Below, in pieces: positions 36,027 through 62,143 of a stretch of DNA of 64,000 bases. The notes beneath the pieces are model-generated. The model searched no databases and was not told the DNA's origin. It saw only the letters and a list, made by a program, of their open reading frames with translations. Each line of letters opens with the position of its first letter. Position 1 is the first letter of the stretch. Source of the DNA: Isurus oxyrinchus. Lineage: Eukaryota. The stretch is from positions 100,812,001 to 100,876,000 of the forward strand of contig JANJGN010000021.1 of NCBI GenBank assembly GCA_026770705.1. Reading direction: 5' to 3'. Position numbers and translations under genes: made by a program.

Positions 36027-36073
36027 GAAAATGGACATAAGACCCGTCCTATGGATATTAGTTGTCTCCTTGG
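36027..36073 (+). CDS. Leader (signal peptide) exon of NKp30/NCR3-like IgSF receptor; ATG at 36031, MDIRPVLWILVVSL-G
   Basis: ccctgcag acceptor, AAAATGG Kozak context, hydrophobic 14-aa peptide, phase-1 donor G|gtaagt matching the phase-1 V exons. Confidence 0.8.
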
Positions 36074-36289
36074 GTAAGTGGGCATTTTATTGTTTCTTAA
36101 CTTTACGAGTTTGTCTTGGGCAACTGCACAGAAATGGGCAATAGTGAAGGGTCAATGGAAAAGCTAACTGGTTCCAGTGCAAGCATACTGCCCAATCGCT
36201 ATCACTTGTTCTGCCGTGCTGTCCAAGATGTCATTTGCTCCACCACCCATCACCTCTCTCGAGTCCCCCATTGTTGCTGAATTATCAAA

Positions 36290-38380
36290 CTGTTTGTCTA
36301 ATATTCTGTACTGGGTGAGCAGAAGTTTCCCCTAGTTAACTATTGTGAAGATTGAAGCCATTGCCATTAGCCCCCACTACAAATTCTGTTTTCCACAAAT
36401 CAACTCCATTTCTCTCCCGAGCAAGTGTCTTGTGGCTGAACCAGAATGCTCACAATCTTGGTGCCATATTTGACTCCCAGATGAGCACCTGACAACATAT
36501 CCATGCAATTACTCAGGCCACCTATTCCTCCCTCCACAAAATCACCTTATTCTGCTCCGTCTCAAATCATCTGTTGCTGAAACCATCATTTGTGCTTTTG
36601 TCACCTCGAGGCTTGACTATTCCAATGCACTCCTGGCTGACTTCCTATATTCTCTCCTCTGTAAACTCGAGCTCACCAGCTCTTTCTGTTCTAAATCGCA
36701 CCAAGTCCAGTTCCCCTATCACCTACAGGGGGCGATGGTGGCGATAATGGCGCAGTGGTAATGTTGCTGGCTGAATAATCTATGGGACCAAACTAATGCT
36801 GTGGGGCACATGGGTTCAAATCTTCGCCACTGCAGCTGGTGCATTTAAATTCAACTAATAAAAAGAAATCTGAATAAAGGTAAAGCTGATCTCAGGGATG
36901 GTGACTATCCCATCTGTTGTTTAGAAGCCCATCATGTTCAGTAATGACCATTAGGGAAGGAAACCTGCCGTCCTTACCTGATCTGGCCTACATATGACTC
37001 CAGGCACACAGCAACATGGGTAACTCTTTACTGCCCTCTGAAATAGCTTAACAAGCATTCAGTTTAAGGGCAATTAAGGATGGGCTACAAATGCTGACCT
37101 AGCCAGCAACACCCACATCCCATGGAAAAGTAAAGAAAGAGAAAAAACCATGTCCCCTGACCTACATTGGTTTCATGTTAAGCAGCCCATGTCCAAATGC
37201 AGCAGGACCTGGTCAATATTCAGGCTTGGGCTGACAAGTGGCAAGTAACATTTGCGCCACACAAGTGCTAGGCAATGACTATCTCCAGCAAGAGAGAATC
37301 TAACCTTGGCCCCTTGACATTCAATGTCATTACTATTGCTGAATCCCCCACTACCAGCACCCTGGGGGGTTACCATTGACCAGAAACTGAACTTGACTAG
37401 CCATATAAATATTCTGGCTACAAGAGCAGGTCAGAGGCTAGGGATCCCCAAAGCCTGTCTGCCAGCTACAAGGCACAAGTCAGGGGTGTGATGGGATACT
37501 CTCCACTTGCCTGTATGAGTGCAACTCCCACAACATTCAAGAAGCTTGACACCAACCAGGACAAAGCAGCTCACTTGATTGGTACCCCATCCACAAACAT
37601 TCACTCCTTCCACCACCAACTCAAAGTGGCAGCAGCGTGTACCATCTACAAGATGCACTGCATAAACTCACCAGTGCTCCTTAGACAGCACCTTCCAAAT
37701 CCACGACCACTGCCATCTAGAAGGACAAGGGCAGCAGACACATGGGAACACCACCACCTGGAAGTTCCTCTCCAAGTCACTCACCATCCTGTGTTGGAAA
37801 TATATCACCATCCCTTCACTGTAGCTGGGCCAAAATCCTGGAACTCCTTCCCTAACAGCACTGTAAGTGAACCTACACCACGGGGCAGTTCAATGGGCAG
37901 CTCATTGTCATCTTCTCAAGGGCAATTAGGGATGGGGAATAAATTTTGGCAGTCAGTGACGCCCACATCCCGCCAATAAATAAAAAAAATCTGTGGCTTC
38001 AAAATTGCCATTCTTGCTTTCAGATCCCTCCATGGACTCACCCCTGTAATCTCTGTAATCATTTCTAGCCTTCAACCCTCCAGGGTATCAGTGTTCCACT
38101 AATTCTGGTCTCTACCACCCTGATTTTAATCACTCTACCTTTGCGGCCATGCCTTCAGCTGCCGGCCCCAAGCTTTGGAATTCCCCCCCACCTAAAGCTC
38201 TCCACCCCTACCTGTCCCTTCTCCTTTAGGATCTCTTTAACACTACCTCAATGAACAAACTTTTCGCCATTTTCCCTACATTTGGCCTTCCGTGGCTTGA
38301 TGTCAAATTTTGTTTTTTAGCAGGCCCATGTACCTTTAGGACATTTTAACGTGGTAAAGGTCCTACATAAACACAAGCCG
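36290..38380 (+). mobile_element. L2 3' region with nested SINE (~36765-37135) and CR1-group fragment (~37185-37988)
   Basis: L2 motifs cttgactattccaatgc and ctacattgg; L2-type tail near 38360. Confidence 0.65.
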
Positions 38381-38966
38381 TTATTGTTGTCCATTGATCA
38401 CAGAATCACAGAATTGTAACAGTACAGATGGAGGGCATTCTGCCCATAGTGTCTGCACCAGCATTCTGAATGAGCATTTCTCGTGCCTCCTCCCCATATT
38501 GTATCTTTTCAAATAATCATATAATTCCTTCTTCAGTGCCTCGATTGAAACGGCATCCACCACACTCTCAGGCAGCGCATTCCAGCCCCTAACCACTCAC
38601 TCTGTGAAGAAGTATTTATTTCTCATATCACTTTTGCTTCTTTTACCAAATGCCTTCAATTTGTGCTCTCTGGTTCTTGAGCTTTCCACCAGCGGGAACA
38701 ATTTTCTGCTATCTACTTTGTCCAGGACCCTTGTAATTTTGAATTCTTCTATCAAATCTCCTCTCAGCCTGACACAGTCAGTTTCTGTCATAGCAGTTAA
38801 TTAAATAGAATTACACTGAAACCCAAGCATCGAAGCAGGCTCCATTCCTGTGGTTGTACTCCAACCGAGCCTCCTTTTATTTCTTTTCATATCCCCACAC
38901 TATCATTTCCCTAAGTCCCAACTTCCACTCAGACAGCAGAAACTGTTGCTCTCTCCTTCTTTCCAG

Positions 38967-39308
38967 GAATTGACGCCGAGAAGTTCAGTGTTTTTCAAAA
39001 GCTGCCCAGGATTCTGGCGGAGGTGGGGCAGACAGTGCACATCCCCTGTAGCTTCATTGCCAACGTCAACAAGGCGATAGGGTCTTATCAATGGTACCAG
39101 GGCGGCAGGAATAGCATTGAGGTTTCCAATGAGACAGCAGAGTACAGAGGGCGGATCCTCAAATCCGGAGAGGATTTTATGCAAGCCCGTGATGCCTCCA
39201 TTCGATTAAGGGACGTGAGAGTGAACGATTCCGGACTGTATTACTGCAAGGTTACATTGATGCAACTGGGCGAGGAATACGGAGCAGGGACAGAGCTGAC
39301 TGTGAGAG
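38967..39308 (+). CDS. Ig V-set exon VA1 (germline-joined VJ type), NKp30/NCR3-like
   Basis: ttccag acceptor, G|gtaagc donor, 342 bp, phase 1/1. IPCSF, AIGSYQWY, EVSNETAEYRGR, DSGLYYC, YGAGTELTV parallel human NKp30 (LPCSF, AIGSVTWF, EVRNGTPEFRGR, DASIYVC, GNGTRLVV, from memory). Confidence 0.92.
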
Positions 39309-39360
39309 GTAAGCGACTCGGCTGCCTGCACAATCGGGGCGAGCAAGGGAGGGGAAGATC

Positions 39361-39925
39361 AACATAGAATCATAGAAACTAGGAGCAGGAGTAGGCCATT
39401 CGGCCCTTCGAGCCTGCTCCATCATTCATTATGATCATGGCTGATCGTCCAACTCAATAGCCTGCTCCTGTTTTCTCTCCATATCCTTTGATCCTTTTCG
39501 CCCCAAGAGCTATATCTAACTCCTTATTGAAAACATACAATGTTTCGGCCTCAGCTACTTTCTGTGGTAACAAATTCCACAGGCTCACCACTCTCTGGGT
39601 GAGGAAATTTCTCCTCATCTCAGTCCGAAATGGTCTACCCCGTATCCTCAGACTGTGACCCCTGGTTCTGGACTCCCCCATCATCGCGAACATCCTTCCT
39701 GCATCTACCCTGTCTAGTCCTGTTAGAATTTTATAGGCTTCTATGAGATTCCCCCTCATTCTTCTGAACTCCAGCGAATATAATCCTAACCGACTCAATC
39801 TCTCCTCATATATCAGTCCCGCCATCTCAGGAATCAGTCGGGTAAACCTTCGCTGCACTCCCTCTATAGCAAGTACATCCTTCCTCAGATGAGGAGACCA
39901 AAATTGCACACAATATTCTAGGTGT
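39361..39925 (-). mobile_element. CR1 3' fragment in repeat unit 1; copies ~41763-42315 and ~44173-44731
   Basis: QFWSPHLRKD...FLTQRVVSLWN. Confidence 0.92.
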
Positions 39926-40420
39926 CAGTGTAGTTGCCCTGTCTGCGACTGGCCCCTATGCTGGGATAGCGGCCCTACGGGGAATGCCGGAGGCAGAGAC
40001 GCACTCAGCGACAGAGATGAGACCATTGAACCATTTTAAATAACCGATCACTTGCCGGGGGTGAGATTGAACAGGTGGGGAGGGGATTTGGAACGGGCGA
40101 TATGGCTTTTAGAGCCCGTCGTACCACACATCCAATATTCAGTGTTACTGAAGCCAGTGGAATTGAATATGGGGCGATGCTTATAAGGGGCGATCAATGT
40201 CACATCACTTGTTTTGTCCGATTTCACCCCGGTTTATGTTTAAGTAGCGGAGGAAGCTTCATGTTAAAAAATAGCACATGTTGGAGAACATGTTGTTTGG
40301 TTGCATAGTTACAACCAGGAGTGCGCTGATAAAAGGAAATCTTCATGGCTTGTGTAACCATTCAGTCCGGCTTCTATTGCGCTTCAAATCAGATAGTATC
40401 ATTTTTCTTTATAGTTCCAG

Positions 40421-40452
40421 AAATTAAGCCTGAGTTCAGAGTTATCCAGTAA
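40421..40452 (+). pseudogene. Truncated VB exon stub 1 (EIKPEFRVIQ*)
   Basis: Same upstream intron and ttccag acceptor as 45228; homology stops after GTTATCCAG and TAA follows in frame. Confidence 0.8.
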
Positions 40453-40970
40453 TCCTCTTCCATAACTTGGAGACTTCTATGACGTCAGTCCTGAGTTTCG
40501 TCTTTTCTAAAGGAAAGAGTACCGGCCTGCTTAATAATTCCTCATAGGGGTGACCTCTCAGTTGTGGTACTATTCTGGCAAATCGTGCTTGCACATTCTC
40601 TGTGCCTCTATATGGCTATTTATGATATGGAGACCAGGGCTGAGCACATTAATTTAAGTATAGCCTAATCAACAGTTAATATGATTCAAATCTTAACAAA
40701 TTCTGCTTTGGCGAAGAACTGAATGGACATAAAATCCGCTGTTCGCGGAATGATGCAGCGCCGAAGAGCCCATTCTGGCTATCATATCGGTGTCAGCTCT
40801 TCAAAAGCCCCTCCTAGTTAGACCCTGCCCTTTCCTCCAGGAGCCTGTCAATGTTTCGCTTTGAAGGATACGACCATTTTCCTTTTCGTGAGTTATTATT
40901 GGACCTGCTTCCGCCACCCTTTCATTCCAAGTGACACATTCCAGGTCAGAACAACTTCGCTGTGATAAAA

Positions 40971-41148
40971 GTAAATTGACCGCGGATGCTGAAAATTTGA
41001 AACAAGAACCAGAAAATACTGGGCAAGAAAAAACTCAGCAGTGACAGCATCTGAAGAAGAGTCATGGGGACTCGAAACGTTAACTCGGTCTTTCTCTCCA
41101 CAGATGCGGTCAGACCTGCTGAGTCTTTTCCAGCACTTTCTGTTTTTG
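40971..41148. mobile_element. Short fold-back Penelope pLTR insertion (duplicated ~43362-43541) with CTGAAGA hammerhead core
   Basis: 14-bp TSD TCGCTGTGATAAAA at 40957-40970 and 41149-41162; core 41051-41085. Confidence 0.8.
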
Positions 41149-41368
41149 TCGCTGTGATAAAACCTTGGTTAACATTGCGCTGAACTACCTCCGCCGCCAC
41201 GCACACCCCAACCCCTCCACCCCTCCCCCCACCCCCCACACACCTCATCACTGCACTTTGTTTGCCCATTTTCAACCATTCCCAATGTAAGCGCTCCTGC
41301 ACCATTGTCTTTCCAAGTCCCAACTTCCACTCAGACAGCAGAAACTGTTGCTCTCTCTTTCTTTCCAG

Positions 41369-41710
41369 GAACTGATTCCGAGAAGTTCAGTGTTTTTCAA
41401 AAGCTGCCCAGGATTCTGGCGGAGGTGGGACAGACAGTGCCCATCCCCTGTAGCTTCACGGCCAACGTCAACAAGGCGATAGGGTTTTACCAATGGTACC
41501 AGGGCGGCAGGAATGGCATTGAGGTTTCCAATGAGACAGCAGAGTACAGAGGGCGGATCCTCAAATCCGGAGAGGATTTTATGCAAGCCCGTGATGCCTC
41601 CATTCGATTAAGGGACGTGAGAGTCAACGATTCCGGACTGTATTACTGCAAGGTTACATTGATGCAACTGGGCGAGGAATACGGGGCAGGGACAGAGCTG
41701 ACTGTGAGAG
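41369..41710 (+). CDS. Ig V-set exon VA2, NKp30-like
   Basis: 342 bp, open frame, intact AG/GT, 6 aa differences from VA1. Confidence 0.9.
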
Positions 41711-42812
41711 GTAAGCGACTCGGCTGCCTGCACAATCGGGGCAAGCAAGGGAGGGGAAGATCAACATAGAAACATAGAAACTAGGAGCAGGAGTAGGCCA
41801 TTCGGCCCTTCGAGCCTGCTCCATCATTCATTATGGTCATGGCTGATCGTCCAACTCAATAGCCTGCTCCTGTTTTCTCTCCATATGCTTTGATCCTTTT
41901 CGCCCCAAGAGCTATATCTAACTCCTTATTGAAAACATACAATGTTTCGGCCTCAGCTACTTTCTGTGGTAACAAATTCCACAGGCTCACCACTCTCTGG
42001 GTGAGGAAATTTCTCCTCATCTCAGTCCGAAATGGTCTACCCCGTATCCTCAGACTGTGATCCCTGGTTCTGGACTCCCTCACCATCAGGAACACCCTTC
42101 CTGCATCTACCCTGTTAGAATTTTATAGCCTTCTATGAGATCCCCCCTCATTCTTCTGAACTCCAGCGAATATAATCCTAACCGACTCAATCTCTCCTCA
42201 TATATCAGTCCCGCCATCTCAGGAATCAGTCGGGTAAACCTTCGCTGCACTCCTTCTATAGCAAGTACATCCTTCCTCAGATGAGGAGACCAAAATTGCA
42301 CACAATATTCCAGGTGTCAGTGTGGTGGCCCTGTCTGTGACTGGTCCCTATGCTGGGATAGCGGCCCTACGGGGAATGCCGGAGGCAGAGACGCTCTCAG
42401 CGACAGATTTGATTCTATTGAACAAGTTTATATAACCGATCACTTGCCGGGGGTGAGATTGAACAGGTGGGGAGGGGGTGTGGAACGGGCGATATGGCTT
42501 TTAGAGCCCGTCGTACCACACATCCAATATTCAGTGTTACTGAAGCCAGTGGAATTGAATATGGGGCGATGCTTATAAGGGGCGATCAATGTCACATCAA
42601 TTGTTTTGTCCGATTTCACCCCGGTTTATGTTTAAGTAGCGGAGGAAGCTTCATGTTAAAAAATAGCACATGTTGGAGAACATGTTGTTTGGTTGCATAG
42701 TTACAACCAGGAGTGCGCTGATAAAAGGAAATCTTCATGGCTTGTGTAACCATTCAGTCCGGCTTCTATTGCGCTTCAAATCAGATAGTATCATTTTTCT
42801 TTATATTTCCAG

Positions 42813-42844
42813 AAGTTATGGCTGAGTTCAGAGTTATCCAGTAA
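42813..42844 (+). pseudogene. Truncated VB exon stub 2 (EVMAEFRVIQ*)
   Basis: As stub 1; in-frame TAA at 42842-42844. Confidence 0.8.
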
Positions 42845-43779
42845 TCCTTTTCCATAATCTTGGAGACCTCTATGACGTCAGTCCTGCGTTTCGTCTTTTC
42901 TAAAGGAAAGAGTACCGGCCTGCTTAATAATTCCTCATAGGGGTGACCTCTCAGTTGTGGTACTATTCTGGCAAATCGTGCTTGCACATTCTCTGTGCCT
43001 CTATGTGGCTATTTATGATATGGAGACCAGGGCTGAGCACGTTAATTTAAGTATAGCCTAATCAACAGTTAATATGATTCAAATCTTAACAAATTCTGCT
43101 TTGGCGAAGAACTGAATGGACATAAAATCCGCTGTTCGCGGAATGATGCAGCGCCGAAGAGCCCATTCTGGCTATCATATCGGTGTCAGCTCTTCAAAAG
43201 CCCCTCCTAGTTAGACCCTGCCCTTTCCCCCAAGAGCCTGTCAATGTTTCGCTTTGAAGGATACGACCATTTTCCTTTTCGTGAGTTATTATTGGACCTG
43301 CTTCCGCCACCCTTTCATTCCAAGTGGCACATTCCAGGTCAGAACAACTTCGCTGCGATAAGAGCAAATTGACCGCGGATGCTGAAAATTTGAAACAAGA
43401 ACCAGAAAATACTGGGCAAGAAAAAACTCAGCAGTGACAGCATCTGAAGAAGAGTCATGGGGACTCGAAACGTTAACTCGGTCTTTCTCTCCACAGATGC
43501 TGTCAGACCTGCTGAGCCTTTTCCAGCACTTTCTTTTTTTGTCGCTGTGATAAAACCTTGGTTAACATTGCGCTGAACTACCTCCGCTGCCACGCACACC
43601 CCAACCCCTCCATACCCCCCCCCCCCTCCAACACACACACACACACACAGAGACCTCATCACTGCACTTTGTTTGCCCATCTTCAACCATTCCCAATGTA
43701 AGCGCTCTTGCACCACTGTCTCTCTAAGTCCCAATTTCCACTCGGATAACAGAAACTGTTGCTTTCTCCTTCTTTCCAG

Positions 43780-44121
43780 GAATTGACGCCGAGAAGTTCA
43801 GTGTTTTTCAAAAGCTGCCCAGGATTCTGGCGCAAGTGGGGCAGACAGTGCACATCCCCTGTAGCTTCACGGCCAACATCAACAAGGCGATAGGGTCTTA
43901 TCAATGGTACCAGGGCGGCAGGAATGGCACTGAGGTTTCCAATGAGACAGCAGAGTACAGAGGGCGGATCCTCAAATCCGGAGAAGATTTTATGCAAGCC
44001 CGAGACGCCTCCATTCTAATAAGGGACGTGAGAGTGAACGATTCCGGACTGTATTACTGCAAGGTTACATTGATGCAACTGGGCGAGGAATACGGAGCAG
44101 GGACAGAGCTGACTGTGAGAG
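43780..44121 (+). CDS. Ig V-set exon VA3, NKp30-like
   Basis: 342 bp, open frame, intact AG/GT, 7 aa differences from VA1. Confidence 0.9.
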
Positions 44122-45227
44122 GTAAGCGACTCGGCTGCGTGCCCAATCGGGGCGAGCAAGGGAGGGGCAGATCAACATAGAAACATAGAAACTAGGAGCA
44201 GGAGTAGGCCATACGGCCCTGCGAGCCTGTTCCTCCATTCATTATGATCATGGCTGATCGTCCAACTCAATCACTTGCTCCCGTTTTCTCTCCATATCCT
44301 TTGACCCCTTTCGCCCCAAGAGCTATGTCCAATTCTTCTTGAAAACATACAATGTTTCGGCCTCAGCTACTTTCTGTGGTAACAAATTCCACAGGTTCAC
44401 CACTCTCTGGGTGAAGAAATTTCTCCTCTCCTCAGTCCTAAATGGTCTACCCTGTATCCTCAGACTGTGACCCCTGGTTCCGGACTCCCCCACCATCGGG
44501 AACATCCTGCATCTATCCTGTCTAGTCCTGTTAGAATTTTATAGGCATCTATGAGATCACCCTCATTCTTCTGAACTCCAGCGAATATAATCCTAACCGA
44601 CTCAATCTCTCCTCATATGTCAGTCCTGTCATCTGAGGAATCAGTCGGGTAAACCTTCGCTGCACTCCCTCTATAGCAAGTACATCCTTCCTCAGATGAT
44701 AAGATCAAAACTGCACACAATATTCCAGGTGTCAGTGTGGTGGCCCTGTCTGTGACTGGCCCCTATGCTGGGATAACGGCCCTACGGGGAATGCCGGAGG
44801 CAGAGACGCACTCAGCGACAGAGATGAGACCATTGAACCATTTTAAATTACCGATCACTTGCCGGGGTTGAGATTGAACAGGTGGGCAGGGGGAGTGGAA
44901 CAGGCGACGTGGCTTTTAGAGCCCGTCGTACCACACATCCAATATTCAGTGTTACTGAAGCCAGTGGAATTGAATATGGGGCGATGCCTATAAGGGGCGA
45001 TCAATGTCACGTCACTTGCTTTGTCCGATTTCACCCCCGTTTATGTCTAAGTAGCGGAGGAAGCTTCATGTTAAAAAATAGCACATGTTGGAGAACATGT
45101 TGTTTGGTTGCATAGTTACAACCAGGAGTGCGCTGATAAAAGGAAATCTTCATGGCTTGTGTAACCATTCAGTCCGGCTTCTATTGCGCTTCAAATCAGA
45201 TAGTATCAATTTTCTTTATAGTTCCAG

Positions 45228-45560
45228 AAATTAAGGCTGAGTTCAGAGTTATTCAGGAGTTGTCGAGTATTCAGGTTGTGGAAGGACAGACAGCGTTCAT
45301 CTCCTGTACGCACACAGCCAATGTCTGTCGTGAAACAGAGTATTATAAATGGTACAAGGATGCCAGAAACGGAACTGAAATTTCTAACGGGACAGCAGAA
45401 TACAAATGACGTTTCTTCGGGCCGAAACAATAGGACATTTTTAACGCTTCCATTCAAATAAATGACTTGAGGGTGCACGATTCCGGGATGTGTTACTGCC
45501 GCGTGACAATGAGAGGTGTCTGCGAGGAATATGGAGCAAGGACACAGCTCGCTGTGAGGG
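45228..45560 (+). pseudogene. Second-type NKp30-like V exon (VB) with two in-frame stops
   Basis: EIKAEFRVIQ..FISCTH..YKWY..EISNGTAEYK*RFFGPKQ*DIFNASIQINDLRVHDSGMCYCRV..YGARTQLAVR; TGA 45407-45409, TAG 45431-45433; splice sites retained, 333 bp. Confidence 0.88.
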
Positions 45561-45629
45561 GTAACTTATTCTCCCGCCTGAAATAACATGGAAGTGAAAT
45601 TACCATTGTCCATATATTCTGGAGCTGGA

Positions 45630-45967
45630 TAACACTGGGGGGTCACACACTGTCCTCCCCCCACCCCCCTCGCCACCCCACCGTGCGACGGGCTGGGGCC
45701 ATGGGTCAGACACTGCCCTTTCCCCCCACCCCCGTGAATGGCTGGGGCAGCGGGTCAGACACTGTCCTTTCCCCCTCTGAGACTGGGTGGGACAGTGGGT
45801 TAGACGCTGTCCTTTCCCCCTCTGGGACTGGGTGGGATGGTGGGTCAGACACTGTCCTTCCCCCCCCCCCCCACCCCCCCCCCCCCCCGGGACTGGGTGG
45901 GACAGTGGGTCAGACACTGTCCTTTCCCCGTCTGGGACTGGGTGGGACAGTGGGTCAGACACTGTCT
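45630..45967 (+). repeat. GC-rich ~45-bp minisatellite
   Basis: Unit cactgtcctttccccctctgggactgggtgggacagtgggtcaga, ~6 copies. Confidence 0.8.
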
Positions 45968-45971
45968 TTAT

Positions 45972-46120
45972 CCCTTCGACAGAACTTCTGTCGAAGGGTC
46001 ATGAGGACTCGAAACGTCAACTCTTCTTCTCCGCCGATGCTGCCAGACCTGCTGAGTTTTTCCAGGTAATTCTGTTTTTGTTTTGGATTTCCAGCATCCG
46101 CAGTTTTTTTGTTTTTATCT
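45972..46120 (+). mobile_element. Penelope pLTR end with short fold-back and CTGTCGA hammerhead variant
   Basis: cccttcgacagaa-c-ttctgtcgaaggg; near-identical to 47515-47649. Confidence 0.8.
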
Positions 46121-46937
46121 CTGTGTTTTGAGCACAGTGTTAAGTTCGCTGTGAAGCAATTATCACCCTTTCCCTCACCTTTCCCCCACCATCCTGATTC
46201 CCTGACATTCTAGTTAGTGGGAACTTATAACAAGCAAATCGGAAGTCTGTAATCTATGAAGGAGCTTGGTTGCTTGGTTGTCAGTTTGCAAGTCAACTCG
46301 GAAAAGTATTCTGAAATCAAGAAAAGCTTCAAGTCTAATAACTAATTGAATATGCCAATGAAGCAATGTACTTATAATCTCTTGGATAGACTGGAATGCA
46401 CAAGTGGGGAAGTGATGGTACAGGTGCTTAGAGTTCTGTTTGGACCACATTTGAAGTAGTGCATTCACTTTCACTCAGCAAAAGAAGTATTTGCCTTGGA
46501 CATCCACAACCCTGATTCACCACAATTAGACTTGGATGTGGTGTTTAAGTTGATTAAAGGGTTTGGTACTGTGCATGGAGATAAATTATTTCATCCGATG
46601 GGAGGGTCAAGAACAATGGCTCATGACTTCTAAATTTAAGATTCGCAATTGAATAGTGAAGCCAGGAAGCAGCACTTCACATGAAAGCTGATGGAAATTT
46701 GAAACTCCCTCTGATAAAACTGTTCAACTCAGGAAAGCTGAAAATTTCACAAGTGAATTGTATAGACTTAATTAGACAATGATAGCAAGGGATACGGTAC
46801 ATGAATGGGTAGATGGAGTTAAGATTCTGATCAACTGTGATCTAATTGAAAGATGGAATGGATATTGGTAGGGCTGAATGGCCTCATCTTGTTCCTCTGA
46901 CGCAATGTTTCTATCTGACTTGCTCTCTTCTCCATAG

Positions 46938-47051
46938 AGAAAACAAAACCTGTCAAGAGCCTATTGTCAATCCTGATCATCAGCAGCGTGGTGGAATTGG
47001 GCCTCCTTCTGCTTGCCACACCCTACTGTGTGAAGTTAAGCAGAATGAATG
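46938..47051 (+). CDS. Transmembrane exon EKTKPVKSLLSILIISSVVELGLLLLATPYCVKLSRMN
   Basis: Polypyrimidine tract + catag acceptor, G|gtaaag donor, phase 1/1, hydrophobic stretch followed by basic residues. Confidence 0.8.
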
Positions 47052-47369
47052 GTAAAGGTGTGTATCTTTGGCTGATTGGCAGGTGTTATGGTTGTAAAAT
47101 ATTGCGCTGTGAGATTTAGATTTGTATATTTAATGTTGAGGTATGCATTTGGCAGCGGTAGGAATACAGGGGAGAATGAGAAGAGTAATATAGTAGAGAT
47201 GGTACTTGACCAGTAACACACTGGTGGCCAGTGAAAACCATACTCTAGTTCAAGGGTCATGTGATGATTTGATAGTGTGGGGAATGTTTATGAAAGTAAC
47301 ATAATTTTGGAAAAACGCAGATGGGGATCTATTCATGCTTTGACCTGCAAGTAACTTCAGGTAACTCAT

Positions 47370-47649
47370 AAAAAACAAAAACAGAATTACCTGGAAAAAC
47401 TCAGCAGGTCTGGCAGCATCGGCGGAGAAGAAAAGAGTTGACGTTTCGAGTCCTCATGACCCTTCGACAGAACTTGATTTCGAGTCCAAGTTCTTTCTTG
47501 GACTCGAAATCAAGTTCTGTCGAAGGGTCATGAGGACTCGAAACGTCAACTCTTTTCTTCTCCGCCGATGCTGCCAGACCTGCTGAGTTTTTCCAGGTAA
47601 TTCTGTTTTTGTTTTGGATTTCCAGCATCCACAGTTTTCTTTGTTTTTA
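47370..47649. mobile_element. Young palindromic Penelope pLTR insertion
   Basis: Perfect arms 47372-47490 and 47497-47615; TSD TTCAGGTAACTCAT at 47356-47369 and 47650-47663. Confidence 0.92.
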
Positions 47650-47889
47650 TTCAGGTAACTCATGATGCTCTCTCAAGTACAAGCTAGTTAGTTATAATAG
47701 CAGTTCCTTCAAGAAAAAAAGCTAATTAACACCCTCCCAGGGAAATTATGAATGGATTAAAAAATTATCTTAATGAACAATTTTTAAAAAAATTGATGTG
47801 CATCCCGAAATCATGCAATGTAGCAATCGAAATTTAAGAGCCACTGTGTAATTTGTGTGCAGCAGAGTAGGAAATTGTTCTGGATATAC

Positions 47890-48558
47890 AAACATATCAA
47901 TTGAAAGCAGGAATAGGCCATTGCGCCCCCCCCCCCCCCCACCACCCCACCCCCCACCCACTCCTAAGCCTGCTCCACCATTCAATAAGATCATGGCTGA
48001 TCTGATTGTGGCCTCATTTCTATGTTCCACCTACCCCCCAATAACCTTTGACAAGGCATGAATCTATATAGCTCTGCCTTAAAAGATATCCATTGTTCCG
48101 GCCTCCACACCTCTGTGGGGAAGAGAGTTCCAAAGAAAAAATAATTCTTCTCATCTCCGTCTTAAATGGGAATCTTCTTATTTTTCAACGGTGTCCCCTA
48201 GTTCTAGTCTTCCTCATTAGGGGAAACATCCTCTCAACATCCAGCCTGTCAAGTCCTTGCAGGATCCTGTATGTTTCAATAAGATCACCTCTCAATCTTC
48301 TAAACTCCAGTGGATACAGGCCTAGCCTGTCCAACCTTTCCTCATAAGATAACCACCACCTCCATGCCACCACCCCAGGTATCTGTCAAGTGAACATTCT
48401 CTGAGCTGCTTCTAACATATTTATAGACTTTCTTAAGTAAGGAGACAAAAACTGTACACAGTACTCTAGATGTGGCCTCACCAAGGGCAGCAAAATGCCC
48501 TTACTTTCATATTTCATTCCTCAGGCAATAAACGGTAACATTCTATTTCCCTTCCTAA
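47890..48558 (-). mobile_element. CR1 3' fragment
   Basis: LSYEERLDRLGLYPLEFRRLRGDLIE. Confidence 0.85.
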
Positions 48559-50396
48559 TGTTAATGCCACATGGTCAGTATCGCCTGGCTGCCCGTAACT
48601 TGTCCATCCAATATTCAGTCATTTTATTTACTCATTCATGAGATGTGTGCATCATTAGTAAGGCCTGTATTTATTGTCCATCTCTAGTTCTTCTTTGAGA
48701 CAACTGTGAGACTTGCCATGCCACTTCAGAGGACAGTTAAGAAGCAGCCACATGTGTGAACCAGACCAGTTTTTGTATGTCAATTTCATGGTTGTTCTTG
48801 CTAGCCTTCTAATTCTAGATGTCTGAACTTGTTTATAATCCTTCAGAGGATGTGAGTACCGCTGGCCAGGCAGCATTTGTTGATCACCCCAAATTGCTCT
48901 TGAGAAGTTGGTGGTGAACAACCGCAGCCCAATTACTTAACTGAATTTAACTTCCTGTGCTGACTTGCTGTCTTTGAAACTCATGTCTCCTGATCAGTAG
49001 CCTGGGCCTCTGAATTACTGGCTCAGTAACCTAATCACTATGCAACTCTACCAATTTAATATACTGGATCTGAATATTGGGTGGTACATTTAACAGGCTG
49101 CCAACCCAATACTGATCATGGCACGCTATTCCTCAAGGTTATACCTACAACGTCTCTCACTTTGGTTGTTTCATGGAGGTTTGCAAAGAGCTGCCTTCTC
49201 CCCTCACTGGTATCTGCTCGAATTTTCAATCAGAAAACTGTTCATAAATGCAACTTGAGGCAATTGCAAATAAATAGGACATGGACATAGGCATCACATC
49301 TCAGTTGCCTCCCCAAGGCTGCATGGTCCAATAAGATAAGCGTTTGGACACCTTCTGATCTGGCAGTTAGCATTACATATCCGATGCTTTGTCATTATGC
49401 TATGGGAAATAGATGCACAAAGTTTTATTGGGATTCTTGTTTTATCCGTTACTTTAACTTAAAGGCAAACATGTCCAAATTAACAGGAAAATCTATCACA
49501 TAAAATAGCAATTTAATTAAAACCTACTGATACACTGATTTTCACATGACAACCAAGTATAAAAGTTTAGAACAGTAATATTTCCATAGAAATTATAGAA
49601 TAGAATCAGCCTATTCAGCCCAACTAGCAATGTCAATTGTTCGCTGAGCTTCCTCCCTCCCTACTTCATCAAACTGTATCAACATAACCTCCAATACTTC
49701 CTTTCTCATGTACTTATCTGACATCCCCTTAAATGCATCTCAGCTATTTTCCTTGATTGCTTCATGAGCTAGCAGCATTCTAGCCACATTGTTGGTAAAG
49801 ACGTTTCACCTTCCTGCATTTAATATCTAACTATCTAACTGTTTATTTATCTAACTGTCTTATCTATCTATCTGCATATCCATCTATCCATCAGCCCCCC
49901 ACCCCCATCAGTCCCTCCACCTGTCTGTCCATCCCTCTGTCCTTTCATCCCTCCCTCCCTCCATCTGATTGTCCTCCGTCTGTCCATCCTTCCATCCATC
50001 AATCCTTCCATCCTTCCATCTGTCCCTCTGTCCATCCCTCTGTCTGCCCTCCCATCTGTCCATCCCTTTGTTCCTCCGTCTGTCCCTCCATCCATCTACT
50101 CCTCCGCCCATCCATCTGCCCATCCACCAGTTATACACTCAACCTTCAAGCGGAAATATCTTCTCTATGTTGACCCCTGAAAGACTCTCAGAATTTCTCT
50201 TAGGCCGCCCTCAATCAATTTGCATTTATATGATACATTTTCATGTTTCTCATACACACTGAATCACTTGGCACATACTTTGAAGCGAAGTTACTATTTC
50301 TCCATGTGTAGAACTTGTAGCATCAAGTAATAAAAGTTAATTGAAACGTTATGTCATTTGTAATCCAATTTTCTTTCTCATCTCCTTATTCATTAG

Positions 50397-50415
50397 ACAC
50401 TCAACAGGCTCAAAG
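50397..50415 (+). CDS. Cytoplasmic micro-exon 1 (DTQQAQ-R)
   Basis: Long pyrimidine tract + cattag; AG|gtgagt donor; phase 1 to 2. Confidence 0.6.
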
Positions 50416-50759
50416 GTGAGTAATTATCAGCATATATATTCATATGTTACGAAATGCACACAGTTAACATTCAAAGTAATTGAAGGAGTTTTCATCCGGG
50501 TGGGGTTGGGGCATCAAAGGGAGGTAGAGGCCTAAACCTTCATCACTTAAAAAAAACTTGGATATGCAGTTGGGGTGGCACAACCTACAGATCTAAGGGC
50601 CAAGAACTGGGGAGCCATATTTGGCTGGAAAGCTCATTTCTGGCTAGCACAGACAAGAGATGCCAAAAAGTCAGCTTCTGTGCCTTAAATCTTTCTTTGT
50701 TTTGATGGTTTTATTTAATGAGAAAATATGGTTGAGTTTTTCATTTTCTTCCTTTCCAG

Positions 50760-50797
50760 ACAAGATACAGTTATTCCAGAAATTGCTTGCATGGAGG
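50760..50797 (+). CDS. Cytoplasmic exon 2 (QDTVIPEIACME)
   Basis: tttccag acceptor; G|gtaagt donor; phase 2 to 1, continues frame. Confidence 0.65.
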
Positions 50798-52393
50798 GTA
50801 AGTAAAGCTGATTTTATGTCATGGACAACAATATCAGCTTCTATGGGGGTATTAGAACCAGAGGTTTTCCATTTATGTGGTTTAAACATGCTTAAAAGTT
50901 TGCAATTTAGTACTCAAGTTATGGTTCAGAAACACCAGGCTGTTCATGCATTACAGTTGGCTTAACTCATTTTTTTAAAAATAAAACTTCATTACATTTT
51001 ACACATCCTCAGCCTCTGAAGGCATCACTTAGTTTTCTTCTCTTCTATTTGACAAAAATGTCATGTCAATAAATGCAATTCCATCTTACAACAGGCCTTC
51101 AGTCCGCAGTTTGTATTAGTGTACATTGGAGAAGCTCAAAGTTGTGTAAGGAAAGCATAATTACAATCCCTGGGAAACAGATACATTATTGAAGGAAGGG
51201 AAAAATTGCAGGGATGTGTGGAAAGAGTGAGGAAATGCGAGGAACTCAATTGCTCTGCGAAAGGGCCAGGACAGATTCAATGAGCATCACCCTGTACTGT
51301 GCATTTCTACTCTGTGATTCTATTCTATTTATGACATTAGTGAACAAATGCACAAGACATCCCACTGTCTGATCTTATAAGATACTTTAGGGTTGAAATT
51401 GGATTTGATTGGAGTCACAGAAATGCTGGAATCATATTTTATTGATCATTATACCAGACGCCTGATATTCACGTCTATCAAATTCAATATTGAATATTAA
51501 CTGTGTAGGTCTTCAATGTGATTGCACGCAACATCTGTTCTACCTCCCAAACCATAACCCTGTCCATTGGTTGAGATGTAATATTGCACAGGGTACAAAA
51601 CCAGTGTTTCAAGCAATCTCTTTAGTTTCCCCATCAGTATTGAAATTGTAATTGTTTCAATTGACTTTGTTGAAATATAGAACCGACTTTGTTTCTTTTA
51701 AAATGCAGTCACTTGATTTGGCACACATTACCTGCAGAAAGTATTTCTTGAAATGCAAGTTATGCAATGAAACTTGATTCTTTATTAACACCCATAAGAA
51801 AAAGTTGCAGCTATTTTGGACAACTATTACTGGAATCTTCCTGAAGCACTGGATGGCTAATTAATTAATTTGTACACTGCAAGGTCACACAATCAGCAAG
51901 TGAGAGTATTAGGCATTAAATTGGTTCTCATTGGGATTGCTTGTAGGAAGTATTTTGAACAGTGCAATGCGAGAGCACCCTACTCTTCTTTGGATGGTGT
52001 ATTTGGATCTTATGTCCTCCAGAAGAGGCAGTCAGGGTTTCTGTTTAAAATCTCACTGACTGAGGAACTTCTGACAATGCAACATTCACTCAGTACTGGA
52101 TGAAAATGATAGGAAGAGCATTCTTCTCAGGCTTTGGAGTGCAACTTGAATCCACGACCTTCACCATTCAGTGTTACAAACTAAGCAAAGCTGGAATGGC
52201 TAAACAATCTCATAGATATGCTTGTGAGGCATCTTACATATAATAAACACTTACTATAAACAAAACCTATACTTGTAACATTTTGTTCCATCAAGAATTG
52301 CCATTATTATAAAGAAGTGCAACCTCGTACTCACCACGAGCAATGCCAGGGAACATATACCTGTATGTCTCATATTTATAATTTGTTTTGCAG

Positions 52394-52434
52394 ATAATAT
52401 AACATCGGTTCTATTGAATGAAGTGGAAGATATG
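52394..52434 (+). CDS. Cytoplasmic exon 3 (DNITSVLLNEVEDM)
   Basis: ttttgcag acceptor; ATG|gtaaga donor; phase 1 to 0, continues frame. Confidence 0.6.
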
Positions 52435-53789
52435 GTAAGAACTTAGCAAGAAGGCAAAATCACATCACTTGAAATTCCCAACATAGGTTTTGAGCAACAA
52501 ATCCCGAACTTCCCACTTATTAAATCATGTATTAAGTCATAGAAATAACTATGCTGTTGCTGAAAATAAATACCATTATTGAACAGGAAGGTGTAATGGG
52601 TCAGGTTTTATGACAAGAATAACTGAGGCTGACAGTGCTCACTGTTATAATGGGGTAAACCTGCCAGCAATGTTTGGTGTCTGCAGTTAATTGGAGAAAT
52701 TGAGAACTTGCTGTCAGAGGCAACCCGCTCCCCATGGGGTCTGCTTCTGCTGCCCTTGCCCAAAGCCTTGGCACTGAAAGAAATGCAATGCCTTGAACTT
52801 GGAGCACTTACTGACTAGCTCTCCTAAAAAATGGCTGAAATAATTAAAGCTGGTGTATTCAGAAGTAAGTGAGTTTTTAACAGTATGAAAATTACTGCCA
52901 AAAGAACCTATATGGCTCTGAGAAAAAGAAACAATTTTACAAGTGTGAAGTCTCTTTCTCTTAAAAGGTTATTAGTTTTGAAAATTTAGATATGATATCT
53001 GTATTTCACAATCTTTATTTCACTTGTGTATGATTTAAACCTAATTTATAGTCTTTACTTTATACATCGTGGTTTGCACATTGGGATACAAATTAATTGA
53101 AGGTGGCAGTGTAACTCAACTATATTCAGCACCTGATATTCAGTTCCATTGCAGTCAATTTAGGTGCAGCATTTATTCAAGAGTGAATCTGATTGCATCT
53201 GTTTTGTGCCATGTCCCGAGATGAACTGTTACTCCTGTGTGTGCCAGTGAGGGGCCTTACATCTGATTGGCTGATGAGCCTCCATGTTCCCAGTCTTGTT
53301 CAGAGATGACTTCGACCACCTACCAATAGTGCCTTGCTCGATCATAAGCCACATGAAAACATGTCTGCACACTGAAGTCCGCAAGAAATAATAATAATAA
53401 TTCTGGGTAGCTGTCAGCAAGGCAGCTGGTGCCATTTCCTCATCTGCATGATCCAGTCATTATAATTTTTATCTACTCAGTGGATATCAAATAACCATAG
53501 GAAACATGGCCATCCTTCAGATTTAATTTTTCACAAATAAATCATAATATTTCCATTTTGTTCCAAATTCATAACATACCCCCACTGGCAAACTATGGGA
53601 AGGATACGGTTTAGCTTTATTTGGATTTAGTTACAAGGATTCCCAACACCTTCTAATAGCAATCAGGCATTTCTGCTCCTTCTTTATTGAGCGTTTAATC
53701 TGTAATGAGAAATATCTTCAAATACTGTTTTTTCATTGATCCATATTCATTAAGCCTTACACTCTAAAGTCTGTATCCTCGATATTTCT

Positions 53790-56522
53790 ACTGTTTCCAG
53801 TTATATGCAGGAATTTAATTAATAAAAGAGGAGGAGGCGTTGCATTATTAGTTAAGGAATCATTTACTGCAGTAAGGAGAGATGATATCTTGGCGGGGGC
53901 ATCGAATGAAGTTTTGTGGGTAGAGCTTAGGAATAAAAAAGGGGTAACCACATTGTTAGGTGTTTATTATAGACCCCCAGATAGTCAGCGGGAAATTGAG
54001 GAGCAAATATGTGCATAATTTGTGGAGGTGTGTAAAAACAATAACAATAGGGTAATTATATTAGGTGATTTCAACTTTCCCAACATTAATTGGGAGAGAC
54101 ATAGTACAAAGGGCTTGGATGGAAGGGATTTCTTGAAATGTGCATAGGAGAATTTTTTAGGTCAATATGTAGAGGGCCCAACAAGGGATGGTGCATTGCT
54201 GGACCGAATTGTGGGGAATGAAGCTGGACAGGTGGCTGAGGTGGTGGTGGGGGAGCATTTTAGTGAAAGCGACCACAACATGGTACAGTTTAAGTTTGTT
54301 ATGGACAAAGAAATTGACAAGTTAAAAAAAATGTTTTGGATTGGGGGAGAGTGGGTTTTAGTAAAATAAGGCAGGATCTGGCCAGGGTAGTCTGGGAACA
54401 GTTACTTGTGGGGAAATCTACAGAGGAACAGTGGGGGGTGTTCAAAAAGGAAATGGGGAGGGTACAGGCTAAACATGTTCCCTCTAGGTTGATAGGAAGG
54501 AGTAACAAGCCCAGAGAACCATGGATGACCAGAGATATTCAGGTTACGATGAGAAGGAAAAGAGATGCTTTTAGCAGGTACAAGGGAAGCAAATCAGCGG
54601 AGACATTAGTGGAGTACAGACAGTGCAGGGTTGAGCTTAAGAAAGCAATTAGGAGAGCAAAGAGGGGATATGAGAAAGCTCTGGCTGGTAAAAATAGGGA
54701 AAATCCTGAGATATTCTATAAGTATATCAATGGGAAGAGGATAACCAGGGAAAGAGTAGGGCCCATAAGGGTCCAAAGGGGCAATCTATAGGTGGAACCA
54801 GAGGACATCACTAGAGTGTTGACTGAGTACTTCACGTCTGTCTGCGCCCAAGAGAATGAGGATGAAGGTATCAAACTCGGGCACAGAGATTGTGAGGTTC
54901 TTAATCAAATTGATATAGGGAGTGACAAGGTATTGGAGGTGTTGTCAGGCTTAAAAGTGGACAACTCCCCAGGTCCAGATGATTTTTGTCCTAGACTGCT
55001 GAGGGAGGCAAGGGAGGAGATCACAGGGGCTCTGACCCAAAATTTTAATTCCTCTCTGGCCACAGGGGAGGTGCCAGAGGACTGGAGAACAGCTGATGTG
55101 ATTCTTCTATTTAAGAAGGGTTGTAGAGATAAGCCAAGGAACTACAGGCCAGTGAGTCTCACTTCAGTGGTAGGGAAACTATTGGAGAAATTTCTGAAGG
55201 AGAGTATCTATCTCCACTCGGAGAGGCAAGGTTTGATCAGGGATAGTCAGCATGGCTTTGCCAGAGGGAGGTCATGCCTAACAAATTTTATTGAATTTTT
55301 TGAGGAGGTGACCAGGTGCGTAGATAAGGGTAGTGTAGTTGATGTAGCTTATATTGATTTTGGCAAAGCCTTTGACAAGGTCCCACATGAGAGACTTATA
55401 AAGAAGCCAAAGGCACATGGAATATAGGGTAATTTGATAAGGTGGATTCAAAATTGGCTTAGTTATAGAAGGCAGAGGTTGATGACAGAAGGCTGCTTTA
55501 CTGACTCGAAGCCAGTGTCCAGTGGCGTACCACAGGGATCTGTGCTTGGTCCCGTATTATTTGTCATTTATATAAACGACATAGATGACTATGTGAGGAG
55601 TAGAATTAGTAAGCTGGCGGATGATACAAAGATTGGCCATGTGGTTAACAGTGAGGTTGAGTGTCTTGGGTTGCAGGAAGATATAGACGGAATGGTCAAA
55701 TGGGCAGATAAGTGGCAGATGGAATTTAACCCTGAAAAGTGTGAGGTGATACACTTTGGAAGGAGTAATTTGACAAGGAACTATTCAATGAATGGCATTG
55801 CATTAAGAAGTTCTGAGGAACAAAGGGACCTTGGCGTGTATGTCCATAGATCTCTGAAGGCGGAGGGGCATGTTAGTGGGGTGGTGAAAAAGGCATACGG
55901 AACACTTGCCTTTATCAATCGAGGCATAGATTACAAAAGTAGGGAGGTCATGTTGGAGTTGTATAGAACCTTGGTGAGCCCACAGTTGGAGTAATGTGTG
56001 CAGTTCTGGCCGCCACATTATAGGAAGTATGTGATTGCACTGGAGGGGGTGCAGAGGAGATGTTGCCTGGGATGAAACATTTAAGTTATGAAGAGAGGTT
56101 GGATAGACTTGGGTTGTTTTCTTTGGAGCAGAGAAGACTGAGGGACGAGGTGTACAAGATTATGAGCGGCATGAACAGGGTGGATAGGGAGCAGCTATTC
56201 CCCTTAGTTAAAAGGTCAGTCACAAGGGAGCATAAGTTGAAGATGAAGAGCAGGAGGTTTAGGGGGGATGTGAGGAAAAATTCTTTTACCCAGAGGGTGG
56301 TAAAGGTCTGGAATGCAATGCCTGGGAGGGTGGTGGAGGCGGGTTGCCTCACATCCTTTAAAAAGTACCTGGATGAGTACTTGGCAAGTCATAACATTCA
56401 AGGCTATGGGCCAAGTGCTGGTAAATGGGATTAGGTAGGTAAGTCAGGTGTTTCTCATGTGTCCGTGCAGTCTCGATGGGCCGAAGGGCCTCTTCTGCAC
56501 TGTGTTTCTGTGATTCTGTGAC
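53790..56522 (+). mobile_element. 5'-truncated CR1 LINE ORF2 with stops and frameshifts
   Basis: YYRPP, GDFNFPNINW, NYRPVSLTSVVGK, GVPQGSVLGP, LADDTK, tgtgattctgtga tail. Confidence 0.95.
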
Positions 56523-56884
56523 TGTGACAATATATGCATATATCTGTGTGGAGTGAATATAAAGAAGCAAGATTCCTTCTTATTGTTATATATTGACAAC
56601 AACATAAATAGCGACACTGGTTCACCTGGCCCTAGTGAGTTGGTGATATAGTAAGCATAGTGGGAAGACCCCTTTGGTCCCAATGTGTTGATGGCTGGTA
56701 AACATAGGGGCCAAAGGGATTTTCTCACTATGCGTTGGTAGTATGTTAAACATAATGGGAATATTTCCTTTATTTTCTGTGTCCTGGTGACATGTTAAAG
56801 GCAATGAGAAGATTTTCTCTGATGCCAAATGTTATTCAAATTATGTTGGGATGCCTTCTGTATTTGAAATACTCATCCATCCAA

Positions 56885-57038
56885 NNNNNNNNNNNNNNNN
56901 NNNNNNNNNNNNNNNNNNNNNNNNNNNNNNNNNNNNNNNNNNNNNNNNNNNNNNNNNNNNNNNNNNNNNNNNNNNNNNNNNNNNNNNNNNNNNNNNNNNN
57001 NNNNNNNNNNNNNNNNNNNNNNNNNNNNNNNNNNNNNN
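56885..57038. other. Assembly gap (N run)
   Basis: Run of n. Confidence 1.
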
Positions 57039-57283
57039 ATTAGACAATTATGATTTCTCTCGTGTTAGGCCATAGATGAATTATTCCTTCAATATATTAG
57101 GATGCCTGGGCCTATATAAATATTTATTTCCCTGGTAAATATTTTATTTTATGACAATATCAAGATGGGGGTCCACTTGAATGTGATCCTCTGCGCATGG
57201 TAAGAAAGTATGTTCCACCTTATCTGAATATATTACACTTGAATGCAAATAATCACTGATATAATTTAATTTGTGTTCCAAAG

Positions 57284-57327
57284 GATGTAAACGAAGAAGA
57301 ACAATCGATCTACACCCCTATGGAAAG
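57284..57327 (+). CDS. Cytoplasmic exon 4 (DVNEEEQSIYTPME) with tyrosine motif
   Basis: aaag acceptor; AG|gtaaat donor; phase 0 to 2; acidic run then SIYTPM; lies beyond the N gap. Confidence 0.55.
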
Positions 57328-61080: not shown

Positions 61081-62143
61081 CCTAAAGACATTCGGCAATT
61101 CGTTAGAAAACATGATGGGCAAGTAACTCAATAAGAATGAATTGAAATGTTCGGCGCGGCTAATGAAAGATTGTGTTCATTAGAAATATTATAAGTGTGC
61201 ATTCTGTACGCTGACACGGCCCTATTCGGTCTTCCTCATCTTCTCCATATATTTCTTATCAGTTGTTGTGGGCCTTCTGGGAATAGTTATCTTTATAGGT
61301 TCTGAAGTACCAGTGATATGGTAAGGTTTTGCTCCAGTGTCATAGCTATGCATTCATCGGGCACGTTTCATAACCACAGGAAGCCGAAGAGTATTTTACA
61401 GCCGACGAGGTCCTTTTGAAATGTAGACATTGACAAATTGTAAGCAGCGCCAATTTGTGCGTAGCAGAGTCCGATAAAAAGCAACGTGATAATGATGCGA
61501 GCTAGTGACTTTGTTTGAGGGAAGCACATTGGCCAGACTATCAGGGAGAACTCCCCTGCTCTTCTTCAAAATAAGGTCACGGGCTTTTTTTTAACGTCCA
61601 CTATGGTTTCCATCTCAGCCGTAATATTGCATCTCCAACAGTACAGCGTTCTCAGCAGTGGAGTGTGTGTGAATTTTAGGTAAGATGGGAGCTTAACACC
61701 ACTAACCTCTGCTTCGGCGATGAGAGAGTACCACTCATTGAGTCACAGCCAACAACAAATTGTAGCTGTCCCGAATTAGTCTAGAAGGGAACATGTGATG
61801 CAACTTGTGTCTGAGGTCTTGATTGAGTCGGGCCCGGGGAGATAAGACAAAACCCATCCCATACCCCCCCCCCCCAAAAAAAACCCCCAGCCCCACCCCC
61901 AGTGCTGGATCTAAATGTAATATGTGAAATTGGTTTGAAGGGCCTCAATTCAATTCTAATTCGCTTGGTCTACAGCAGGAAATTTAGTTCGAAACCGATA
62001 ATTCCATTCTCAGATGAATAGCTGTTCTGGAAAATGGGAATGTTGAACTGGAGATACTTTTTTCAGATCTACATTGGGTCCATACTACACCTGACACAGC
62101 GCAAAAAGAAGACGAGTCCTTCATTTTACCGAGCACAAAATAG
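61081..62143 (+). other. Candidate distal cytoplasmic exons (61081-~61118, 61299-61320, ~61976 onward); frame unresolved, possibly decayed
   Basis: Strong acceptor ttcctgacag ending 61080, donor ATG|gtaagg at 61320, acceptor tacag ending 61975; no single convincing reading. Confidence 0.25.

Follow-up and report, generated by a model that had tools for sequence, protein, structure and literature searches.

A probable three-V receptor gene of the NCR3 family in Isurus oxyrinchus, with a dead exon of an older V domain type

Introduction

Few natural killer (NK) receptors have been conserved all the way from sharks to humans. NKp30 (NCR3) is one of them, and most accounts present it as a protein with a single variable (V) domain. 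The human receptor is activating; it has one ectodomain, a short tail, and a transmembrane (TM) arginine for pairing with CD3zeta/FcRgamma. Members of the nurse-shark NCR3 family and of XMIV are linked to the major histocompatibility complex, and some of them carry tyrosine motifs in the tail. The nurse-shark NCR3 family (GenBank MT914154-61) was reportedly described by Kinlein et al. in Immunogenetics in 2021 (73:333) and, together with XMIV of Xenopus, is said to represent an expansion of NKp30-type receptors with joined V and J segments (VJ) in cold-blooded vertebrates. Other comparison systems are the cassette exons of the Dscam type and the double-V receptors, namely shark NAR-TCR, marsupial TCRmu, and amphioxus VCBP. 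Here we analyze a gene of the shark Isurus oxyrinchus that lies in a stretch of 64,000 nucleotides (nt) from contig JANJGN010000021.1 of assembly GCA_026770705.1 (positions 100,812,001 to 100,876,000; hereinafter the window). The gene has three tandem NKp30-type V exons (V1, V2, and V3) between a single leader exon and a single TM exon, with the remnant of a further V exon, psiVB, behind them (Table 1). We regard it as probable that the gene encodes a single inhibitory receptor of the NCR3 family, with three VJ domains in tandem in its default product, that two unequal crossovers gave rise to these domains, and that an old second domain type, VB, is dead and skipped.

Three NKp30-type domains, probably on one chain

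All three V exons are recognized as Pfam V-set domains (E 1e-13 to 1e-14), and the best match of every one of them in the PDB is human NKp30 (PDB 3NOI, 3PV6, 6YJP, and 9FWW). In the PDB sequence search, human NKp30 takes the first four places (E 4.1e-14 to 5.9e-14), ahead of shark VNAR at 2e-7 and T-cell receptor (TCR) V domains at 1e-5; CD28/CTLA-4 is not among the top 60 PDB matches. The distance between NKp30 (about 4e-14) and the next family (2e-7) upholds the original prediction, made from the letters of the sequence alone, that the domains are NKp30-like. As in human NKp30, the VJ unit is joined in the germline and contained in one exon: a J-like end, YGAGTELTV, closes each 342-nt exon directly before the donor and fits the pattern G-x-G-T-x-L-x-V. 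When the domains are aligned with NKp30, the shark AIGS falls on Ala49-Ile50-Gly51-Ser52 and the shark DFM on Arg84-Phe85-Leu86, an alignment by which the AIGS and F-hydrophobic contact positions may be conserved. In the NKp30 crystal structure, B7-H6 is contacted by Ile50, Gly51, Ser52, Phe85, and Leu86 (PMC3135353). V1 and V3 have AIGS, and V2 has AIGF, which by alignment places a Phe at the position of Ser52. On these sequence features, the domains are NKp30-type germline-joined VJ domains.

The exons form a single gene on the + strand, with phases that agree exon by exon. They were searched for singly with tblastn, using full-length homologues as queries, and their frames were established by phase arithmetic rather than from a spliced coding sequence. 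The layout first proposed, a leader, three open 342-bp phase-1/1 V exons, a TM exon, and a phase-consistent tail, stands with small corrections of coordinates. So does the claim that neither a leader nor a TM exon lies between the V exons, as a tblastn scan of the intervening sequence with 14 full-length homologues gave no leader-like or TM-like coding match.

RNA joins the V exons to one another. Sequencing runs were found by a search with V3, and four of them were aligned to positions 43700-47100; all of them consist of contigs, which speak to presence and not to amounts or isoform counts. We take these runs as RNA because the contigs are spliced. The first joint leads from 44119 to 43778 and thus goes back 342 nt; it occurs in runs X1, X4, and X5, which represent three studies and two organism labels. 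It connects a V-exon donor to a V-exon acceptor, as expected of V(n)-to-V(n+1) splicing mapped on one copy. Contigs of run X1 agree with V3 letter for letter over its first 268 nt (to 44047), and in one such contig the end of a V exon is joined on in front. The second joint, from 44117 to 46934 in runs X4 and X5, leads from V3 to the TM exon and skips psiVB. Its coordinates are offset because the contigs read GTGATAG/AGAAAAC (the TVI end), and their ATAG was aligned to the same four letters in the intron ahead of the TM exon. In these two runs the aligned piece stops at the TM donor (47057), and the contigs, of 1296 and 1083 nt, continue beyond the aligned region. The contigs of organism A (run X1) equal V3 of the window exactly, and those of organism B (runs X4, X5, and X11) have V2-type letters together with a RefSeq-like V3 end in TVI. 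Since V-to-V joints are found in three RNA runs, the V exons are not mutually exclusive as those of Dscam are. These joints, together with the lack of leader and TM matches between the V exons, also rule out three separate genes.

An orthologue in a second genome

The orthologue is LOC121291130 of Carcharodon carcharias (white shark), which is annotated in RefSeq as an uncharacterized protein with isoforms X1-X5 (XP_041068137-41); these isoforms are computed models over exons that are 95% identical. Isoforms X1 and X2 have the order V1-V2-V3-TM-tail, and isoform X5 combines three V domains with an alternative short tail. V2 is skipped in isoform X3 (V1-V3) and V3 in isoform X4 (V1-V2), and no isoform with one V domain is among the five. 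The gene is therefore already known, though unnamed, and what is gained here is interpretation and not discovery; with multi-V relatives also predicted in many elasmobranchs, the novelty first ascribed to the locus was overrated. Together with the joints seen in RNA, isoforms X1 and X2 confirm that one gene carries all three V exons. They likewise favor the first half of the original alternative between a three-V receptor and a splice-generated repertoire, the second half being hinted at by the models X3 and X4.

Each TM and tail exon in the window encodes the same protein as its counterpart in the white shark, with 100% identity, and the leader differs at one residue. Substitutions are denser in the V domains, where 15 of 337 residues differ, than in the rest of the protein, where 1 of 152 does (Fisher p 0.03). 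Besides these substitutions, V1 of the orthologue contains a 7-residue repeat, GTELTVR, that is absent from the window gene, and its V3 ends in TVI, whereas that of the window ends in TVR. In the tree, V1 of the window pairs with domain d1 of the orthologue and V2 with d2, and V3 is nearest to d3; the position-specific residues DSEKF of V2 and ILI of V3 are matched in both genomes. Because V1 and V2 pair by position with d1 and d2, the triplication is older than the split of the two genomes. All three V exons are open with intact splice sites in both.

Triplication of one domain type and death of another

A tandem repeat with a period of 2402-2415 nt carries the V exons, and each of its units contains one V exon, the tail fragment of a long interspersed nuclear element (LINE), and the first 29 nt of a VB exon. 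Outside the exons, the units diverge by 3.0% (U1-U2), 5.7% (U1-U3), and 6.9% (U2-U3), a pattern that fits two successive duplications in which U3 was the first to split off. The V exons themselves differ pairwise by 12, 12, and 18 bases, or 6-9 residues. The ratio of nonsynonymous to synonymous substitution (dN/dS) among them is 0.28-0.48, on only 12-18 substitutions per pair. The copies are thus under mild constraint, and no positive or diversifying selection is seen among them at these small counts. Their splice sites are near-identical (ttctttccag/GAA ... GAGAG/gtaagc). The LINE fragment within the repeat unit is older than the duplication. Between the units lies a filler of about 860 nt (40450-41309 and 42842-43720), which is matched neither upstream of unit 1 nor behind unit 3. 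It holds a repeat of about 100 nt that is present at about 10 other sites in the window (e.g., 4351-4447, 22375-22471, and 47516-47612).

The original prediction counted three V exons in all and did not list psiVB, a fourth V exon that is dead. It is interrupted by two in-frame stops (TGA at 45407 and TAG at 45431), is about 65% like V1-V3, and has a broken J motif with GAR in place of GxG. The tree places psiVB together with the last V domain (VB) of the catshark and the horn shark, which is functional there (support 99/95). This grouping identifies psiVB, on the evidence of the sequences compared, as the remnant of an ancestral second domain type. Units 1 and 2 each carry a VB stub because the repeat unit ends 29 nt inside the VB exon, and the stubs at the breakpoints have diverged from each other between units. 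Splicing from a V donor into a stub, if it occurs, would yield a protein cut off behind its first or second V domain. RNA depth is absent from psiVB, including its start (the part equivalent to the stubs), in all three spliced runs. Just past psiVB lies a G/C-rich short tandem repeat (45600-45980, with units of about 45-110 nt) that produces long spurious open reading frames (ORFs) on both strands.

The sequence of events suggested by these remains would be as follows. A segment of about 2.4 kb, reaching from 61 nt upstream of a V exon to 29 nt inside VB, would have been duplicated in two rounds of unequal crossing-over, yielding the three V exons, and the ancestral VB domain would later have decayed to a skipped pseudo-exon.

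A putatively inhibitory tail

The predicted product would be a type I membrane receptor with the ectodomain V1-V2-V3 and no C domain, followed by the TM segment and a long tail encoded by micro-exons. Two traits of mammalian NKp30 are thereby lacking. In place of a single ectodomain there are three V exons, V-V joined in RNA, and in place of the TM Arg and short tail of the activating receptor the TM segment contains a Glu and the long tail contains an immunoreceptor tyrosine-based inhibitory motif (ITIM). The TM segment, SLLSILIISSVVELGLLLLATPYCV, contains the Glu, and both Arg and Lys are absent from it. This Glu (SVVELGLL) is kept in horn-shark relatives (AAGEIGIF and AAVEVGIL). The tail has a YxxM motif, SIYTPM, and a canonical ITIM, IQYASI, which satisfies the consensus [I/V/L/S]xYxx[I/V/L]; the last exon of the orthologue adds YDEL. 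From these motifs the receptor reads as an inhibitory member of the NCR3 family. In such a receptor, the NKp30-like face (AIGS and DFM) may bind the ligand, and phosphorylation of the ITIM tyrosine could recruit an SHP-type phosphatase and so deliver an inhibitory signal. Three V copies would in that case confer multivalency or reach, not repertoire.

The tail extends well beyond the limits first set for the gene (36027-57327): its exons reach 63762 and continue past the end of the window, where the final exon or exons lie (those of the orthologue encode HDYGYDEL...), and an alternative coding exon lies upstream of the leader. For C5, a GT donor at 61122 was discarded, since it gives a premature stop in the resulting frame; the GC donor at 61119 reproduces the protein of the orthologue. 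A GGPLECDPLRM-like stretch at 57165-57199 is homologous to a tail exon of the horn shark. It was rejected as a coding exon, as its 35 nt break the frame after the preceding phase-0 exon and it is absent from the isoforms of the orthologue.

Alternative readings

The three-V receptor outlined above is our preferred reading, in which near-identical, phase-symmetric splice sites bring all three V exons into the default product. Several observations weigh against it. No single read or contig covers leader-V1-V2-V3-TM in this organism. The first joint, taken alone, could in principle be a one-exon back-splice, although linear V-V splicing is far more likely given the RefSeq models. Those models also include the 2-V isoforms X3 and X4, so that V inclusion may not be constitutive. 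The dN/dS values draw on 12-18 substitutions per pair, and both the inhibitory signaling and the ligand are read off motifs. An acidic TM residue is, moreover, atypical for an ITIM receptor, and the reading offers no explanation for the Glu.

The strongest competitor, which we hold to be possible but rather unlikely, is that the symmetric V exons are cassettes included in regulated combinations on one tail (V1-V2-V3, V1-V3, V1-V2, and perhaps single-V forms). Every V exon is in phase 1/1, so any subset remains in frame, and isoforms X3 and X4 of the white shark depict two such subsets. The Phe of V2 at the Ser52 contact position means that the copies may differ in binding. However, these two isoforms are computed models, and on exons that are 95% identical, junction reads are readily assigned to the wrong copy; a 1-V isoform is not listed. 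The near-identical splice sites of V1-V3 give no hint of a mechanism of selection, the V-to-V joints show that the exons are not mutually exclusive, and copies that differ by only 6-9 residues would make any repertoire tiny. The Phe itself is not found in V2 of the orthologue.

More doubtful still is an extended form of this idea, a regulated splicing module in which the skipping of V2 or V3 would alter valency, reach, or fine specificity, and the use of psiVB or the stubs would add stops, giving secreted single-V decoys or a dosage controlled by nonsense-mediated decay. If true, this would represent a recombination-free tuning of an NK-type receptor that recurs across the multi-V NCR3 genes of elasmobranchs.

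It seems very improbable that only one V exon is functional and that the others are young duplicates on the way to becoming pseudo-exons, carried along or skipped. The fate of psiVB shows that V exons of this gene can die, and the 12-18 substitutions per pair are so few that frames would be expected to stay open in the absence of selection as well. Against this, neither of the two genomes has a stop or a damaged splice site in any of the three exons, dN/dS is below 0.5, V-V joints are present in RNA, and the copies predate the split from the white shark of RefSeq.

Least credible of all, and rejected here, is that the V units are alleles or haplotypes assembled in tandem over a real gene with one V exon. 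In its favor are the regular period of the units, their identity of 93-97%, and the assembly gap in the same gene. It is contradicted by the RNA contigs, in which one V exon is connected to another, and by the independently produced RefSeq assembly of a close relative, whose three V domains agree with those of the window in position-specific residues and positional orthology. A model from the basking shark likewise contains three V domains or more, and the breakpoint stubs have diverged between units.

Table 1. Placed exons, exon remnants, repeat units, and assembly gap of the Isurus oxyrinchus gene (positions in the window)
Feature	Positions	Strand	Remarks
Alternative upstream coding exon, MEAAGRWRWYSGIVMG	30479-30525	+	Donor GTTAGT; tblastn with orthologue protein; used in orthologue isoforms X1 and X3-X5
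Leader exon	36027-36073	+	ATG at 36031; codes MDIRPVLWILVVSL + G; donor GTAAGT; phase 1; tblastn, phase check
Tandem repeat	38906-45256	+	U1 38906-41309, U2 41310-43720, U3 43721-45256 (truncated)
V1, open 342-nt VJ-type V-set exon	38967-39308	+	Phase 1/1
VB stub 1	40421-40452	+	VB acceptor + 29 nt of VB, then in-frame TAA at duplication breakpoint
V2, open 342-nt VJ exon	41369-41710	+	Phase 1/1
VB stub 2	42813-42844	+	Structure as stub 1; in-frame TAA
V3, open 342-nt VJ exon	43780-44121	+	Phase 1/1
psiVB, older second-type V exon, 333 nt	45228-45560	+	Between V3 and TM exon; AG/GT intact
Stalk/TM exon, EKTKPVKSLLSILIISSVVELGLLLLATPYCVKLSRMNGK	46938-47057	+	Glu within TM segment; tblastn, phase arithmetic
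Cytoplasmic micro-exon C1 (DTQQAQ)	50397-50415	+	Phase 1 to 2
Cytoplasmic micro-exon C2, RQDTVIPEIACME	50760-50797	+	tblastn, phase check
Alternative terminal exon	51947-52103	+	Short tail without ITIM, as in orthologue isoform X5
Cytoplasmic micro-exon C3, DNITSVLLNEVEDM	52394-52434	+	Ends in phase 0
Assembly gap, 154 N	56885-57038	.	In intron between exons 52394-52434 and 57284-57327
Relic micro-exon (GGPLECDPLRM-like, 35 nt)	57165-57199	+	AG and GT present; 127 nt past N gap
Cytoplasmic micro-exon C4, DVNEEEQSIYTPME	57284-57327	+	Starts in phase 0; YxxM motif
Cytoplasmic micro-exon C5, SLKTFGNSLENMM	61081-61118	+	GC-AG intron; donor GCAAGT at 61119
Cytoplasmic micro-exon C6, GSQSSPIKSQKQ	62984-63018	+	tblastn, phase check
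Cytoplasmic exon C7	63665-63762	+	Canonical ITIM IQYASI; donor GTGAGT

Other contents of the window

Besides this gene, the window contains transposons and nothing else. ORFs of LINE reverse transcriptase (Pfam RVT_1) and LINE-tail fragments fill the introns, at 54336-56434 (+), 4559-5305 (+), and 39454-39909 (-), the last of these with copies in units 2 and 3, and LINE fragments draw very deep contig coverage in every run. The assembly gap sits just downstream of the insertion at 54336-56434. Since the protein of the orthologue crosses the gap-bearing intron without interruption (M436/D437), no coding exon has been lost in the gap relative to the RefSeq isoforms, and the notion that one of the exons of the orthologue is hidden there was dropped, though the gap may hold an unannotated alternative exon.

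Multi-V relatives and implications for the family

In a sequence search over 1.84 billion representatives, the top-scoring matches were multi-V proteins. Multi-V gene models are found in sharks (Heterodontus francisci with VA-VA'-VB, Scyliorhinus canicula with VA-VB, and Cetorhinus, the basking shark, with at least 3 V domains), in rays (Mobula with 2 and 5, Hemitrygon with 3, and Hypanus with 2), and in frogs (Leptodactylus and Bombina, each with 3). Like the gene described here, these relatives line up NKp30-type V domains in tandem on a single chain and have a similar TM segment with Glu and the tail motifs EEQSIYTPME and IQYA. They differ in the fate of the second domain, as the horn shark and the catshark keep a functional VB, whereas in the window gene VB is dead and VA has been triplicated. 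V duplicates cluster within species in the tree, which points to repeated lineage-specific exon duplication or concerted evolution. No paper on a multi-V shark NKp30 was found in literature searches, which did not reach the main shark NCR3 papers. An analogy may be drawn with Dscam and the double-V receptors, with which the gene shares tandem phase-symmetric exons for Ig domains and more than one V domain per chain; it differs in that its V exons are spliced to each other and rearrangement is absent. Docking or selector elements were not seen either, although no search was aimed at them.

The locus shows, with support from RNA, that the NCR3 family also builds multi-V receptors, putatively inhibitory in this case, through exon duplication. 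It is at the same time an instance of domain turnover, in which VB died while VA triplicated. Taken with the models of 2 to 5 V domains in sharks, rays, and frogs, it suggests an unrecognized multi-domain branch of NCR3, and it offers a natural system for studying how tandem VJ domains behave without rearrangement.

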